From: Podarcis cretensis
Lineage: Eukaryota
DNA length: 64,000 bases
NCBI GenBank assembly: GCA_951804945.1
Contig: OX638151.1
Location: 85,188,001 to 85,252,000 of the forward strand
Reading direction: 5' to 3'
The notes beneath the pieces are model-generated. The model did not search any database. It was not told where the DNA came from and saw only the letters and a list, made by a program, of their open reading frames with translations. Shown here one piece after another: positions 4,472 to 62,000 of the stretch; positions within the stretch are counted from its first letter, which is position 1, and every line of letters starts with the position of its first letter. Both the position numbers and the translations under genes were made by a program.

Positions 4472-5063
4472 ATTACTTTAATTTACAAATTCTAGGGAGT
4501 AAAAACTACATTTAAAAAACAACTAGTTTAACTACTTAAAATAAGTTTAAGCTGGTTTAGATTCATTGTTGTAAATTCAGTACTTACAACAAAAGTTTGT
4601 TGTTAAAAGCAGTTTGGGTGAGAGCTAATAACTGCAGGAAGCTCCTCTGCCACCACCAGTTCATGCTTGCTGAGAAGCTACTTGCAAATGTTGGAGAACC
4701 AGGAGCTATAATCAGAAGCATCAGTTGCAGAAATCCTAGTGCATGCACAAAAGTGCTTGAGGGGATGTATGGGGATATTTAGATGCTGTTGTTATTTGCA
4801 CACTTGTAATACAGTGCCACATTTTCAAGAATGAATTGAGTGCTTAGAAGGAGAATGAATTTCATCCCTCCAGATGATAGTTCCAATTGTGGTTATACTT
4901 TTCTCATGCAAACTAATTTATATCAGTTACGTTTATTTTTATGATTATGTGTGCATCTCCCCCATAGTAAAAAATATTTTTACTTTTATTGACAAGGAAA
5001 TAATACTTTTGAACCTCCACCCATGAAAGACCTATGCATTTGTGGTCCTTGTTTTGTCTAGAT

Positions 5064-5199
5064 CAGGCAAAGGCAACCTTCGGCCCTCTAGATGTTTTGG
5101 ACTACGGTTCCCATCATTCCTGACCACTGGTCCTGTTAGCTAGGGATCATGGGAGTTGTAGGCCAAAACATCTGGATGGCTGAAGATTGCCTTTGCCTG
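5064..5199. mobile_element. hAT (Charlie-type) palindromic MITE
   Basis: TIRs caggcaaaggcaa/ttgcctttgcctg; 8-bp TSD gtctagat (5056-5063, 5200-5207) matching the NTCTAGAN target preference. Confidence 0.88.
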
Positions 5200-8100
5200 G
5201 TCTAGATGTTTTGATGCTTGAATTGTCACACTCTTTGGGAACCTGATCAGTGTTACAAATTTGTATCCTGTCTTCCTGACTGACAATAAGACTTCTAAGT
5301 TATCTGAAAGTAGATGAAAACTGATACATATTAACAAATTAATAAGATTGTTTAAAGAGGAAGGACTGACTTATATTTAAAAAGGAAGAGGGGAACAGTG
5401 ATGGCACATGTTCTCTTCCTAGGCCTTAGATGTTGCCACTTCTGTGTCTGTTTCAACTGCTGTTCTCTGAAGGTTCCATGGAAACCATAGAGGATAGTAG
5501 ACCCCTCCCTTGTTTGTTACCTATAAATCAGGGCCAGGGAGTACCAGATGTTTCAGTCCCCAAGAGAATAGAGCATCTTCTCACATGAGCAGCTGGACAA
5601 TCAGCAACTCCTAGCGTTTTCTGATAATGGAGGCCTGATGAAGGTTCTGGGGGGGGGACGGTGATGGAAAATGTCCTGTCTCTGAGCTTTGCTACTGATG
5701 CTGTGATTCTTTCAACTGCTGCTTTTAAAAGTTCCATGTTGACACTATGGGTGAACAACACCTCTCCTCAAAAAAGTATGCTACCTTATAACCCATGATC
5801 AGCTACTGCCAGATAGTTTAGTAATCATCTGATGTTGCAGCTCCAGACTAGTTCACTCTAATGGTCCAGTATTTTTACCCTGATTCCTTCAGTTCCCCTA
5901 GTCACTGGCAAATGGGTACTGATTATAATTTTCATGGGGCACATGACTGAGTTCTTCCCTCCAGCCCCAAAGAATTTTTTTTCCACCCAGGATTACCTTC
6001 ACAGCTAAAGAAAGGATCAAAATTCTTCCCTGCAGGGAAGCAGTTGAATTGGTAGCAAGTACTTTTTAACTCTACAGTTTTTATTTGAAGTATTTTGGGA
6101 TGTCTAACCTCAGAAGTTCAGGATGGTGTCATTGGATACAGCCTTTCTCTCAATTACCCTTCAGGTAATTGATCATGCCTGATTCTCATGGCAATAGCCT
6201 CAGTCACAGCAACAGGCTTTGCCTCAGTTGCCCTTTCAGGCTGTGAGAGCATGGACAGAATTCATGATGAATAGATTAATCAGATGATGCTCAGTCATGC
6301 ACATTGTCCTTCTGCACAGCTCAAATTACCACCCATGTCTATGGATCTGTGGAGGAGGAGGATGGATCCAGCTGGCTGGCTAACTGGATCCAGAGGCTGA
6401 TAGCTTGTGAACTGACACAACAGCTAAGACTTCCTTTCTGTTCACCTGTTGTGGTGCTTCTTTCTGGAGATGATTTGGCCATCATGAGGCCCCTTTTATG
6501 TCTTTGCAAAAGCTATTCGACTGTGGGCTTAGTTTTCCGTCTTGTGAGTGCTCTTGGCAAGGTACTCTGCGAGTCCTGTTTGCTCCCCAGATTTCTGTGG
6601 CGGTGGTCATCACATGATTCTCATCAAGGTTGGGGAGTAGGTTGTGGGAAACTCATCATTTCTTCTTTGTGGTATGAGGCCCTTGAAATGTCCATAGTCT
6701 TCCACGCATTTTGGCCAGCAAGATTCCCCTTGGAAATATTTCCTCATAGCATAGCAACCATTTCCAGAATAAGTAATTAGAGAAGTATGGAATCAGGTGC
6801 TCTTGCCTCTGAACTTTAGCATAGCAGTGGGGCGTACACAGTGGCATCATTCCTACAGCAGTTGATCTCTGGGAGAGGATGATGATCTCGCAGGCTTCTT
6901 GGTCAGATGGGATGCTGATTGCACTGTGGTCCAATACTTGTTCCACTTCTGGGGATCTCTACCTCTGCTAACAACGAGTACCTCTAAATCTGTTGCTGAG
7001 CAACCATAGGTTGTTGGAGAATGCATTTCTTTTAAGGTGGGATGAATATTTCCTTTCATACTATCTTGCTGATAACAAGGACCATCATAAAGATAAGATG
7101 GACAAGATAGACTGCATTCTTTCCAAGACCGCCATGGTTACTACTGTTTGCTGGACTTTTCAGACCCTTCTCCTTCAGATTAAGAGCAGACTTGCCTTCC
7201 CAACAATGTCAGATCTCAAGATGATAGTCTATCGGGTCTTTCGGATGAGACTGAGGGCACACAAACAGCTCATGTGGTCTTCTCTAAGGATCTCGCCTGA
7301 CAAGGACCCCGGGGATGCTCTGGAAGAACAACAACCCTACAGAGAACTCCTTTACACCTGGGACCTGGAAGAACTCTGTTTCATTGCTGATTAAGCAGAA
7401 GTTTGTTTTTTGTTTTTTGCAGTTTTTCAAAGGGGCAGGGGAAACCTTAGGAGAAGTGGAAGTTTATGCAGTATTTTCTTATAAAACAAAACTTCTCTGC
7501 TTTAACAAAATAAAATGTATCATAACTTAGAATATAAAATTGCACCATTTAATATATTTTTTATGAAATTTAAAATGGTGAACTGTAAATATCCCAAGTT
7601 TTAGTCTGCTTCTGTGGTTGGTGCTCAGTTCTTACTCAAACTTCCAGATTTTTCCTTTCAGGCTCTGGAACCCATAGTTCCTGTTCCACCTTTTTCCTGA
7701 CCTTTTTTTAAATCATCCAGCAGGCCAGGGCAGTAAGTTACTTGTTTCCCAGTTTGTAGCCAGGTGTCTGTCACAGTCATTTTGAGGGAAAAGGTGGAAG
7801 GGACCATCTTTGAAAGCATTTCACTCATTCTAAAAGAAAAACATATTTCATAGGACACTCACCCACAATGTTCTCCCCACATTTCCCCTAGAAACATTTA
7901 AAATTTATTTTGGAGGGGAAATAATTCTTCCCTACTCTATCTCCGCTCCCCCAACATGGGTCTTGAGGTCTCTAACTTGACCTCTTTGGGCCTGGAGTAT
8001 TTGCTGCATATGCTGGAGGGTCTTCAGAGCAGGTCAGCAGCTTTTAGCCAGGATTTCTCAGTGGATCCTTTAAGTTCAGAAGCATTATGGCACTCAGTAT

Positions 8101-11040: not shown

Positions 11041-56352
<45,312 letters not shown>

Positions 56353-57969
56353 CCAGCATTTAAAAATGCTAATAAACAGGTACAGCTGAGCAAGTGGTAG
56401 AACTAAGGATATCTGCTTTCTGCTGCTATTTACAAATGAGAATACGTTCTGATTTGGAAAAAGTATAGCAAAAACAAACCGAACATTTCTTTGAAAGAAG
56501 TATGTATTTTAAACTTTTGCTATTTATTGCCCTCCAAGTAGGTTATACATTTCAATTCACTTTGTTCAGTTGGTATTGAAGATTGTATAAATGGAAATTC
56601 TTGATTTGCAGAAATGTTACTGTAATTTTGGACAGTCAGTAACCTCTATTTGATTAAAATTGATAGAATTTTTAATGTAACAGACTGAGAACAGAACTCC
56701 TATTTTTGAATGAGCAAGGTACAGTACATTTGTATAGAGTGTAGTATCTGTGTTTTGCAGGATATTAGCAGAGTGTGGCAGTAAATGCCATTGAGAACAA
56801 ATGCAAAATTCCAAACATTGCTAATAAGATGTTTAATTTCAGTAGTAATTGGGCACACAGCTTTGTACAAACAAACCTAGTGCAGCTTGTTGGTTTATCT
56901 AGGTTCAGCCAGAGAGAAAAATCACACTATGTAGATATATATATCCACATTGGAAAAAGTTTGACTAATATGTCTAATTTTTCAGACCTTCATTCTCGTA
57001 TCAATCAAATCTCTGTTTATTGTGCCAAAGATTGAAAACCGGTGCAGTAGAAAAGTTTTTAGTGTCAGTGCAGCATACATTTTCCAATTATGCTTATGAA
57101 TCTATGTTCTAAATATACACTGTTCTGAAAAATTATCTCTACTGGTACTTTGTAGTAAAAACAATTAATGCACTGGTGGGATCCTTAGGCAAAATGTATA
57201 ACTGGGTTAAAGGATTCAAGGAAACTGCAGGAAAAGTGTGAGATTCTTATGTTTACGATGCGATCAGATTGATTGTTTATACAAATTGTGTTAAAACTGA
57301 CTAAAATTTTAAAAAGTGTCTGTGTATGTATATATTATGTACACAAGCACATAAATATATACAATATTACCCAGGAATAATTTTTTTCAGGACTTTTTAG
57401 ATAATACTAGATAAAATTTTAAAATGTCATACTTTTATTTTAAGGGGAAGATTGGTTATTTTCAATTATTAAAGATAAAAAGGCCAAATCACTTTTTATG
57501 CAATCATGTTTTATACAGTGTTCTCATTGCACATTGTTTTTCTGCACTTTTTACAGTGTACTTATCAAGCTGACATAAGTCAATATATACACCCTAAAGG
57601 AAAATCCCACTTAATGATTGTGCCTTGTAGTCTATTATTTTGTGCATCTTTAGTAAACTTAAGTTGTCTATTGTAAATGACTATATGACTTAGGGGAATG
57701 TATTGCTGTATGTACTGCTATGGAAAAAGAAACAGTTATTTATTTGTTTATGGTACATTTACTTATTTTATACCTTTAAAACAAAGTTTGTATTAAAACA
57801 AACTTTAATACAATTTCTATTGTTTGAAAGTATAGTCCAATTTAAAAGAAAACAAAATACATCTTTAAACAGTTGCATGGTACAAAAATGTAACCACACT
57901 TTTCATTGAACACTCTTTGGGAGAAGTAAGCCTCAATCTAGAGATGCAGATGTATACATACCTGTTCAA

Positions 57970-59088
57970 AAGATAATTGGTGCCGGCAGCCTAGCTGCTT
58001 GGATAGTAAAGATCTGAATATAAACCTCCCATGCTTCCACTGGTGGGGGAAATGTTAAAGGGGCTGCTTTTCCACCTCTCCAAACAGATTATTGGCTCTA
58101 CCATGTTGACAAAACACAGCTAAACCTTCGGTTACGTGAATATAATACTGGTAACAACACACACAAAACGTCAGGCTGTTTGTGACTATGTAACTTCTTT
58201 TTCAAAAACAACTCAGCATGTAATACACAATATCACAAGGTGTAATTCCATAAATCAAGAGAACATATTCTGATAAATTGAAGTCCAATGGATGGTCATG
58301 AGAGGCAGTCCATTCAGTTGTAAATTTGGCAAACAGGCAATAACCACGATATGGTATGCTTATCCTGTGGTGTTCCACATCTCACCGCTTTCAGGATTCT
58401 AGCGTTCTAGTGTTCCTTACATGCAGATAGCAGATGGAAAACTTGAAAGCATGGCACAACAAGGATTCCGGGATAATACCTTGTTTTGCCCCATCAGGCT
58501 TTGTCAGCCATACATACTCATAACTCTACCTATTATGTTCCATGTTTTCGGCACACAAGAATATGAGTATGCACAGCTGACGAAGCCAGATTGGGCGAAA
58601 CAAGGTATTATCCCGGAATCCTTGTCATGCCATACTTTCTAGCTTTCCATCTGATACCTACATGTAAGGAACACTAGAACGCTAGAATCCTCAAAGCAGC
58701 GAGATGTGGAACACCACAGGATAAGCATACCATATCGTGGTTATTGCCTGTTTGCCAAATTAATAACTGAATGGACTGTCTCTCCTGACCATCCATTGAA
58801 CTTTAATTTATCAGAATATGTTCTGTTGATTTATGGAATTACACATTGTGATATTGTATATTCCATGTTGAATTGTTTTTGAAAAAGAAGTTACATAGTC
58901 ACAAACCAGTATTATATTCACGTAACCTAAAGTTTAGCTGTGTTTTGCCAACATGGTAGAGCCAATAATCTGTTTGGAGAGGTGATAAAGCAGCCCCTTT
59001 AACATTTTCCCCGCATCAGGGGAAGCCTGGGAGTTTATATTCAGATCCTTATCCTCCAAACAGCTAGGTTAACGGCACCAGTTATCTT
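57970..59088. repeat. Long inverted repeat (foldback) in the PHIP 3' UTR
   Basis: 57970-58522 is the reverse complement of 58562-59088 (e.g. 58323-58383 pairs perfectly with 58701-58761). 39-nt loop; one 27-nt bulge. Confidence 0.97.
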
Positions 59089-62000
59089 ATGTTTTGTGTG
59101 TGTCTACCATTTTGGCAACATTGACAGTCTGTGTTAATATGTAGTTTCCAGTCCGGGTTTGAGGACTGCAGGTGGAAGCAACTTCAGGAACTATGTATGC
59201 AACACAGCTTTGTATGCAACTTGATACTCAGTTCATTAGTGCACATATGTTGCTCGCAGTTGATGGCATCTGAGGTTCAAGATTAATATGCATCTTTCAT
59301 CCATTTGTGTCCATGGCAATTGGTTCTTAAAATGCATTTCTGATTTTATCGCAAATACTCATAAACATCAAGATAATTCACTTTTATTTGAAGTAGACTA
59401 ATTGACGTTATGATCAGGCCAGTTTAGAATGTTTGGAGGCAGGGAAGATTCTGTTTTGGTTGGTTAGTTGCCATCACCATCTCCTCTAAATAACCCATAT
59501 TGGTTTGGCTTTTAAGAAAATATCTTCAACTAAGAGTATTTGCCAAATCGTGATTTACAGTAGAATAATAAATTCTACTGGCACTAGTCCTCCTTGGATA
59601 CCTATTTTCATTAGCATATTATAATTATGGGATTTGGGACACTGACTTATGTTTTTAAACATGCATTCTTACTAATATTGCAGACATTAAACATGAAAAT
59701 ATTTCAGCAGCCTATGTACAGTGATAGTTCATTTCACAATGGAAGCATTGCAGTAGATTTATCTGGTCCATTTAAGAATTTCACTGTTGATGAAGGCAAT
59801 CAATTTCAAATGTGTGATTTCCTTTTGTTATCTGCATTGTTATATAAAAGAAATTGGCAAAGCAAACATGAAACCCCATTACTGTAAGTTACTCCTTTTA
59901 TAACTATGTCCCACTTGGCATATATTTATGTATATACTTGTATACATCAAGTATGTGTATGTAACGTTGGAGAATGGAATAGTACACATCACCATCATAG
60001 TGTCTGAAAATTACACATTTCAGAACAAAAGAATCAAGTCTTATTTGCAGTACACAAATGTATTGTTCCCCATTCATGAATAATTTTGTACTAAGAATTC
60101 ACAAGCTTATTTTTTTTCTAACATTATTTTGGTAATACATTTGTGTGGAAACACTTAAAACTGTAATTGTGCTAGATATACTACATAAGTGTTTTAAATT
60201 GCATTGGTTTGACTTAAATTACTGTCATTGGTTAGATTTGACTGATTTGCAAAAAAAATATTGTACCAACACAGAAGAGCTTTTGATTTAGCACATTTTA
60301 ATATAAGCAATAAATACTGGTTCACTAACTTTTGGAGGGGGAAACCGTAATGAAATGTGTTATGGATAAAACTATTGAGAGCAAAGTAATATTTATTTTA
60401 TGGCACATTTACATGGAAAATACTATGTAGACACTCTTTCTGTTGGTAATTACAGATATTCACACAAGCAATTATCTTACAAACTTGGCAGTAATGAAAA
60501 CAAATGTAAAATGCAGTCTACTGATACAGCTTCTGATACAGAGCGGTCCATTAGTTCCATAATGCTGAACATTAAATTACTTCAATATTAACCAGTGGTT
60601 ACTATACAGCGATGTCTGATAGCAGCACATTCCATTTTCTTTGATTGGGAAATAAGTTCATTTTCACTCCAGTAATCAATCCCTTGTTTGGCTAAACGGG
60701 TTTGAAATTTAATTGTTTCCCAGGGATTAAGCTTGAATTACATTGGTATAATACTGGGTACTGAAGAAATGATCTTTATCATTGTGGTATGAGTAGCGAT
60801 GCAGCTTTACAAAACCCGTCTTCCTATAGTACTGCTGTGATGTAAACTTGCACAAAATTATTCGTACCATACTGTCAATTTTTCCATGTGTTGTTTAATA
60901 CTTTATCTTAGTTTGGATTGATCTTTGTAAAATACCAATTCAAAAGCATGTAGTACTTCTCAACGTTTAAAAATGAATGGGGACATAGTTTCAGTACATA
61001 AGTCATGTGCTGTGTTACGACTCTTTGTGAAATACCAATTTGAGCTTTCAGTTTCATGAGCTTTAGTACATCTAAAGTGATATTAAGACCCCAACCAGAA
61101 CTCCATACACACAGCTCTTAGTGTGTTGATTTCTGCAAAGAGCTGATCCTACTGTGCTGAAGAATGTGGATCCTTTGCTTTGAAGCAAGAGCTCCTGGTG
61201 GTCTATTTAATGAAAGCTTAAGGCCACAATCCAGTCGTGCCTTGCATCCTCAGGGCATGCAGGAGTTTCCTGCCATCCATCTCACCCACACCGGCCATCA
61301 GACTTCCCACAACTGGAGAGGTGCACTTGTGGGACAGCTGTGTCCTAGTGTGTGTAAGGGACCGACTGGATTGATCCTTATTGTAAATTTTGATGTATCA
61401 ATCTTGCATTTCATGTTCTTGGACCTAAGCAATCATCTGATAAAAGGGCTGTTCAGTTTCTGCTGTAAATAATGTACATATGTTTATAATTCAAAAAAGG
61501 TGTACATTTCATATATAGTGGCCAAGTCTGAAAATTATTTCTAATATAACAAAATCTGGTATTGTGTTTTTTTTTAATGTGCTAACTTTACATAATTACT
61601 CTTGGAATAATGGTGAAACAGAAAATTATTTTGTTGCTCTCATTTCCCCATTTGGTTCACAACCTTTTGGAATAAAAGGTACCCTCTGTTTCAGGAAGGT
61701 TACATTTATTTCAGGATATTTTTTGTTAAAGTACCGTAGATGTGAGATGGCATTTTGAAGATGGAAATAGCATATTTGCTGTTAAAGACCAAACCCCAAA
61801 TCTGCCTTTTTTAAAGGGTAAATAATTTAAGGAGCTATTTATATGAAAAATCATTTTTCTTTTGATACCAAAAAGGGAGCCAAATGCTGAATATTTGAAT
61901 TTTAAATAAATGCAGATAATTGCTTCAGGATATGGTATAAATTTTTGTTCATGATATAATTAGTGCTGAAAATTACTATACCTTTAAAGATACAGCACCA

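Follow-up and report, generated by a model that had tools for sequence, protein, structure and literature searches.

How did an inverted repeat of about 1.1 kb come to lie downstream of the gene PHIP in the lizard Podarcis cretensis, and does it now serve that gene as an RNA structure? Animal mRNAs are strongly depleted of long well-paired duplexes (Barak et al., PMC7006430), which are among their rarest features because of the resemblance to viral RNA (PMC7006430). We have followed the hairpin through its window, i.e. the whole stretch of 64 kb of genomic DNA that was analyzed, and argue that its origin is probably ordinary, an old insertion of a mobile element being the most likely account. 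The parts of the locus to which the text refers are, in window coordinates:

55702-56352, + strand: reading frame with the last PHIP coding exon and stop codon (86% identity to the PH-interacting protein of Varanus komodoensis)
57967-58522, no strand assigned: left arm of the inverted repeat, 556 nt, the inverted copy in the sense of the hammerhead-like motif described below (repeat search and alignment)
58151-58177, no strand assigned: AC-rich insert of 27 nt, left arm only (alignment)
58523-58561, no strand assigned: asymmetric loop or spacer of 39 nt (repeat search and alignment)
58562-59091, no strand assigned: right arm of the inverted repeat, 530 nt (repeat search and alignment)

Global alignment of the two arms (57967-58522 with 58562-59091, separated by the 39-nt loop) gave 479 matches and 49 mismatches, corresponding to 90.7% identity, and three gap events of 2 nt, 1 nt and 27 nt, the last of which is the left-arm insert. 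By the repeat search the arms were recovered as three collinear inverted blocks: 58178-58522/58562-58906 with 91% identity, 58045-58152/58905-59012 with 94% and the outermost one, 57967-58025/59033-59091, with 83%. The longest uninterrupted Watson-Crick helix runs for 61 bp from 58323; eight perfect helices reach at least 20 bp and three reach at least 33 bp, the latter number rising to four when G:U pairs are allowed on the sense strand. The hairpin RNA is predicted to fold with a minimum free energy of -806 kcal/mol when read from the + strand and of -849 kcal/mol when read from the - strand. The sequence-only reading had described a genuine hairpin of about 1.1 kb with a 39-nt loop and about 90% pairing, and the alignment bears this out, the 61-bp run lying exactly where it had been placed; the limits of 57970-59088 given there were confirmed, except that the repeat extends 3 nt further out on each side. 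Two short matches were seen at the right edge. The 13-mer 58157-58169, within the left-arm insert, is the exact reverse complement of 59091-59103, which straddles the right edge of the repeat; it is of low complexity and rich in CA/TG, and the match may be due to chance or may be a trace of template switching. Just beyond the right arm, 59103-59118 agrees at 15 of 16 positions with the reverse complement of 58945-58960, internal to the right arm. Short two-copy matches of this kind often arise by chance.

The identification of PHIP is based on the reading frame of the last exon, the protein product of which has many further squamate relatives. The hairpin starts 1,614 nt downstream of the PHIP stop codon and on the PHIP strand, which bears out this part of the sequence-only reading. 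Poly(A) hexamers are found before the hairpin at 56371, 56653, 57468 and 57792, with others after it, so that inclusion of the hairpin in the mature mRNA depends on the poly(A) site used. The mammalian PHIP 3' UTR is several kb long. It is plausible that the hairpin lies inside the mature PHIP mRNA, and its designation as a 3' UTR element is one that we infer from its position. The intron preceding the last PHIP coding exon contains a GC-rich block (54400-54950, 57% G+C vs 30-45% elsewhere), inside which several repeats, both inverted and direct, occur.

The arms are without protein-coding content. No Pfam domain was found in them, no look-alikes of their reading frames were found in the ESM Atlas, and searches of these frames against large protein libraries returned either nothing or only chance matches to translated CRISPR arrays. 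The entries P0066-P0071 of the representative protein library are such translated CRISPR arrays, with repeated VSIPYRGYSFFN-like units, and they catch short queries by chance. A former reading frame in the hammerhead sense is not supported: only two stop codons are common to both arms over 176 codons, but this result was equalled by 9% of column shuffles. Neither tRNA-like parts nor tandem repeats or sub-repeats were found inside the arms, and the only miRNA-type signals from Rfam on the hairpin were sub-threshold plant and animal miRNA precursor models, discounted because any perfect hairpin draws them. When an arm was compared by BLAST with the 64-kb window, the partner arm was the sole match and no second copy was detected, which agrees with the earlier remark that the arms are unlike the other repeats of the window. 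Exact-pattern scans of metagenome and viral contigs gave zero matches or chance 16-mer matches in microbial contigs. Another inverted repeat of the window, 150 bp long (5057-5206; 65-nt arms, 83% paired, 20-nt loop), looks like a MITE-type squamate repeat.

Palindromic sequences may be produced during assembly, when a long read is folded back on itself. Such artefacts exist: contig L058 from a soil metagenome (4,037 nt, GC-rich bacterial sequence) is a near-perfect palindrome throughout and is most likely an assembly fold-back, its palindromy accounting for its two inverted matches to a 16-mer of the hairpin. For the PHIP hairpin the chance of this explanation is next to negligible, because the arms are about 9% apart with a normal substitution spectrum as well as indels, and because words of the hairpin are present in related organisms. 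The latter was established by looking up sampled words of 57700-59400 in an index of public runs, none of which is recorded as RNA. Four runs (X1-X4) representing one organism, three samples and one study contained 68-88% of the sampled words, the highest value (88%) belonging to X1, which may be the window's own assembly sample, and 68-80% being reached by the runs of the two other samples; under five further organism labels 45-60% of the words were found. These shares exceed the 34% that the flanks alone could supply, so the relatives must also have hairpin sequence, and the hairpin is present in several related organisms. Six small, transcriptome-sized contig sets (X15-X20) from two further organisms contained 18-20% of the words of 57700-59400; if these sets are RNA, part of this interval is transcribed in relatives.

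Beside the centre of the hairpin each arm carries a motif resembling a hammerhead ribozyme:

58565-58637, + strand: hammerhead-like motif of the right arm (read from the sequence and recovered by a descriptor scan)
58447-58519, - strand: decayed mirror copy of the motif in the left arm (arm alignment and folding)

The right-arm motif starts 15 nt from the loop and reads outward from the centre. It comprises the core CUGACGA (58577-58583), an unpaired A (58584), a helix II of 3 bp in which GCC pairs with GGC (58585-58587 with 58594-58596), GAAA (58597-58600), a helix III of 6 bp (58600-58605 with 58620-58625) with a 14-nt loop, and a GUC cleavage triplet ending at 58626. The core of a type I hammerhead (CUGANGA and GAAA), the A15.1-U16.1 pair and a residue other than G at position 17 are thus all present within 58577-58626. 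In a type I hammerhead helix I is paired from the cleavage site, whereas in the right-arm motif it is imperfect, an A.G opposition at 1.1/2.1 beside the cleavage site being followed by 2 bp, a 2x1 loop and 7 bp. A descriptor asking for this core, for 3 bp or more in helix II and for 5 bp or more in helix III, with A-U as the closing pair of the latter and a non-G residue next to it, had the right-arm motif as its sole match in the 64 kb. Shuffled windows contained 0.23 matches each, or about 0.004 per 1.1 kb, an estimate of chance that is post hoc, as the motif had been spotted by eye after other ideas.

The Rfam hammerhead models gave no match on the hairpin at E <= 10, even with 221 nt alone as the input, a negative result of little weight, since the same models also miss the Penelope-type motif at 34.2 kb in this window. 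The mirror copy differs from the right-arm motif at four positions, two in the core (both CpG sites) and two in helix II; its helix II has 4 bp and is a better stem than that of the right arm, and when folded alone its lowest-energy structure is a three-way junction. Judged from these sequence features, 58565-58637 is a candidate hammerhead motif.

Motifs of this type are known from Penelope-like elements (PLE). PLE hammerheads have an unpaired base before helix II, and paired PLE motifs have been found on opposite strands at a distance of 100-700 bp (PMC4209133). The insertions are heavily 5'-truncated, often with an adjacent inverted and likewise 5'-truncated copy and a one-sided tail of 30-40 bp; where the target is microsatellite-like, the duplication is difficult to discern (Craig et al., PMC8557442). 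The PLE protein of a lizard cleaves and extends both DNA strands, unlike the enzymes of LINEs (Frangieh et al., PMC11167929), and this action on both strands predicts head-to-head double copies. Non-autonomous hammerhead-bearing PLE derivatives have lengths of 51-972 bp, and where they overlap exons these are mostly 3' UTRs (bioRxiv 10.64898/2026.07.22.740005).

Two PLE copies are present in the window itself. The one at 34064-34286 is a Penelope-type foldback flanked by a direct duplication of 14 bp (34050-34063 and 34287-34300); its arms (34101-34190 and 34201-34290) are 90 nt long, 99% paired and separated by a loop of 10 nt. At 8 nt from its centre there is a core of hammerhead type (CTGAAGA...CACGAAAGC), which reads outward, and a one-sided tail of 37 nt occupies 34064-34100. 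The other (24373-24441, - strand) is a single 5'-truncated copy of the same family, in which the hammerhead-type core has an extra unpaired base before helix II and the 5' end is a 6-nt palindrome.

The PHIP hairpin and PLE foldbacks, including that at 34064-34286, share several traits. Both consist of two inverted copies placed head to head, with a hammerhead-type motif, in the hairpin a candidate one, beside the junction on each strand, reading outward; both have an unpaired base before helix II (A 58584 in the hairpin, as in the PLE-type copy at 24.4 kb), non-coding arms, and AT-rich or microsatellite-like flanks. Two adjoining inverted copies of one element end, the mark of a PLE-type head-to-head insertion, are what the hairpin contains. 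They differ in size, the arms of the hairpin being about 550 nt long, i.e. about six times the roughly 90 nt of the 34.1-kb foldback, and its extent past the cleavage site being about 465 nt against about 90 nt in the Anolis PLE. The motifs differ as well: the minimal PLE hammerhead has a helix II of 7-8 bp and no helix III or one of 1-2 bp, a description that the hairpin motif, with 3-4 bp in helix II and a stable helix III of 6 bp, does not fit. The tail and the duplication of the 34.1-kb foldback have no demonstrable counterpart at the PHIP hairpin, and there is no sequence similarity between the hairpin arms and the two PLE copies of the window. The animal non-LTR retrozymes (bioRxiv 10.64898/2026.07.22.740005) resemble the hairpin in that the unit is non-coding, measures a few hundred bases and includes a motif like a type I hammerhead, and the length of the hairpin unit falls inside the range of retrozyme derivatives (51-972 bp); retrozymes, however, are defined by tandem head-to-tail units, and the hairpin is a single inverted pair.

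The position of the motif beside the centre, its unpaired base and the inverted-pair geometry point to a Penelope-like foldback insertion. We put the probability at about one half that a non-coding retroelement of the PLE/retrozyme kind, equipped with a hammerhead, inserted here long ago as two inverted 5'-truncated copies head to head; it would probably belong to a family that has no sequence match in the window. The silence of the Rfam models, the imperfect helix I, the unlike helices II and III, the long arms, and the lack of a tail or duplication and of a second copy count against it. Such an insertion would begin with cleavage of both target strands by the enzyme of the element. Reverse transcription primed on both cut strands would then give two copies joined head to head as a 1.1-kb palindrome, in which the 39-nt loop may represent the excess of one element copy over the other, and neutral decay of both arms would bring them to about 0.10 substitutions per site between them. 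Retroelement origin and double priming, like transcription of the element within the PHIP mRNA, are features that we infer.

The ends of the repeat and its base composition have to be set beside this scheme. The repeat ends lack any target duplication of at least 7 bp, the flanks agreeing at no more than 3 of 7 or 2 of 8 bases; the ends permit at most 2-4 bp (TT, or TGTT against TTTT). Further out, 57904-57919 and 59119-59133 make up a candidate duplication of 16 bp that was equalled in 29% of shuffles, the outward extension of the repeat was weak and not above that of shuffled flanks, and no one-sided tail could be demonstrated. The statement of the sequence-only reading that there is no obvious target duplication is supported, in that none could be demonstrated. 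From end to end the element is terminal inverted repeat, with the termini 5'-CA...TG-3'. The G+C content of its arms (41% and 39%) exceeds that of the surroundings (29-37%), every 1-kb window of the downstream sequence being lower, which speaks for foreign DNA rather than for duplicated local sequence.

Ends and composition of this kind could also belong to a foldback-type non-autonomous DNA transposon, a MITE-like element with long terminal repeats that was moved by a transposase and in which the hammerhead-like motif is a coincidence. The element is terminal inverted repeat throughout, with CA and TG at its ends, a duplication of 2-4 bp is possible, and the arms are non-coding and richer in G+C than the flanks. 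We nevertheless consider this origin unlikely, as it leaves the central motif unexplained and no second copy exists in the 64 kb; a foldback or MITE would have a target duplication of fixed length at the repeat ends, where only the 2-4 bp are available, and the exclusion of 7 bp or more speaks against the hAT, P, Mutator and Merlin types. The absence of a demonstrable target duplication, of a second copy in the window and of homology to other repeats would suit still another origin, in which template switching during replication or repair copied sequence downstream of PHIP in inverted orientation 39 nt away. We hold this to be distinctly unlikely: both arms surpass every 1-kb window of the surrounding downstream sequence in G+C, the motif exactly at the centre of symmetry would have to be a coincidence, and 550 bp would be large against the known short template-switch events. 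Of the two origins that had been proposed earlier, a foldback mobile element and a local inverted duplication, the former is thus favoured and the latter less so.

Whatever the origin, the hairpin might have been retained for a function, and the differences between the arms allow this to be examined. The 49 mismatches comprise 32 transitions and 17 transversions (ratio 1.9), six of the mismatches being in a CpG context, and the arms stand at a Kimura two-parameter distance of 0.10 from each other, i.e. about 0.05 per arm. At 1e-9 substitutions per site per year, a rate that is assumed and not measured, the hairpin would be some tens of millions of years old, in agreement with a repeat common to related species. 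The mismatches are spread roughly evenly: a perfect run of 61 bp has a probability of about 13%, and the excess of divergence in the outer 59 nt is only marginal (p = 0.05). Selection for pairing of the sense strand predicts more G:U than A:C oppositions among the transitions; the sense strand has 11 G:U and 21 A:C, a departure in the opposite direction that is not significant (binomial p = 0.11). The differences between the arms look neutral and nothing points to selection for structure.

It has been suggested that the hairpin is a regulatory module or an siRNA source, and a version of this idea independent of origin would make it a selected dsRNA module of the PHIP mRNA that acts as a target of ADAR or Staufen, as a nuclear-retention signal or as a source of endogenous siRNA. 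Long duplexes of this kind bind ADARs and other dsRNA-binding proteins by default. The hairpin is on the PHIP strand 1.6 kb past the stop codon, three of its perfect helices reach 33 bp or more (four with G:U on the sense strand), it is found in several related organisms, and the retention of a long duplex is unusual in view of the strong depletion of such duplexes from animal mRNAs (PMC7006430). We nonetheless judge selection for such a role highly unlikely, given the 21 A:C against 11 G:U on the sense strand, the better pairing of the antisense RNA (-849 vs -806 kcal/mol), a transition-to-transversion ratio and an even spread of mismatches that fit neutral decay, the several poly(A) hexamers that follow the stop codon ahead of the hairpin, and the poor handling of long 3' UTR hairpins by somatic vertebrate Dicer, as seen in mouse cells, where hairpins of more than 400 bp were poorly diced (Demeter et al., PMC6391682). 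The proposal of a module or siRNA source is not supported, nor is the further claim that this is the window's best candidate for an undescribed system: the selection test is opposite in direction, the substitutions look neutral, and the hammerhead-like motif is placed as in Penelope-type foldbacks.

If the PHIP transcript spans the element, about 520 bp of imperfect duplex would form in it: the left arm would be made before the right arm, which would zip onto it while emerging. Such a duplex would out-compete the hammerhead fold of about -17 kcal/mol, so the motif on the sense strand should stay inactive. Transcripts with comparable structures are known. Inverted Alu pairs (PMC7006430) likewise give a long intramolecular 3' UTR duplex from mobile-element DNA, with the difference that the hairpin, if transcribed, stems from one insertion and not from two independent SINEs, and that its duplex, at about 520 bp and with a loop of 39 nt, is far longer. 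The engineered MosIR-type transgenes with long 3' UTR hairpins (PMC6391682) have the same architecture, in which the 3' UTR of a polymerase II transcript contains an inverted repeat exceeding 400 bp, their hairpins being perfect and designed against a target and the PHIP hairpin being 91% paired. We give very little credence, slightly less than to the selected module above, to the notion that the hairpin belongs to the mature PHIP mRNA of lacertid lizards and has persisted there over tens of millions of years as a dsRNA module peculiar to this lineage, hyper-edited or bound by dsRNA-binding proteins, that holds the hammerhead of the sense strand inactive; were it true, opening of the hairpin by any agent could switch the stability of the PHIP mRNA.

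An old insertion of a hammerhead-bearing retroelement is the reading that we prefer, and the locus has its use under that reading too. A sense-strand hairpin of 520 bp, 91% paired, situated past a broadly used gene and common to several lizards is a useful natural case, which could show whether a long duplex is tolerated because it lies far from the main poly(A) site, because the RNA is edited or simply because it decays. If the hammerhead lead holds, Penelope-type foldback insertions would extend to arms of about 550 nt, and the known families would be joined by one with a stable helix III in its ribozyme.
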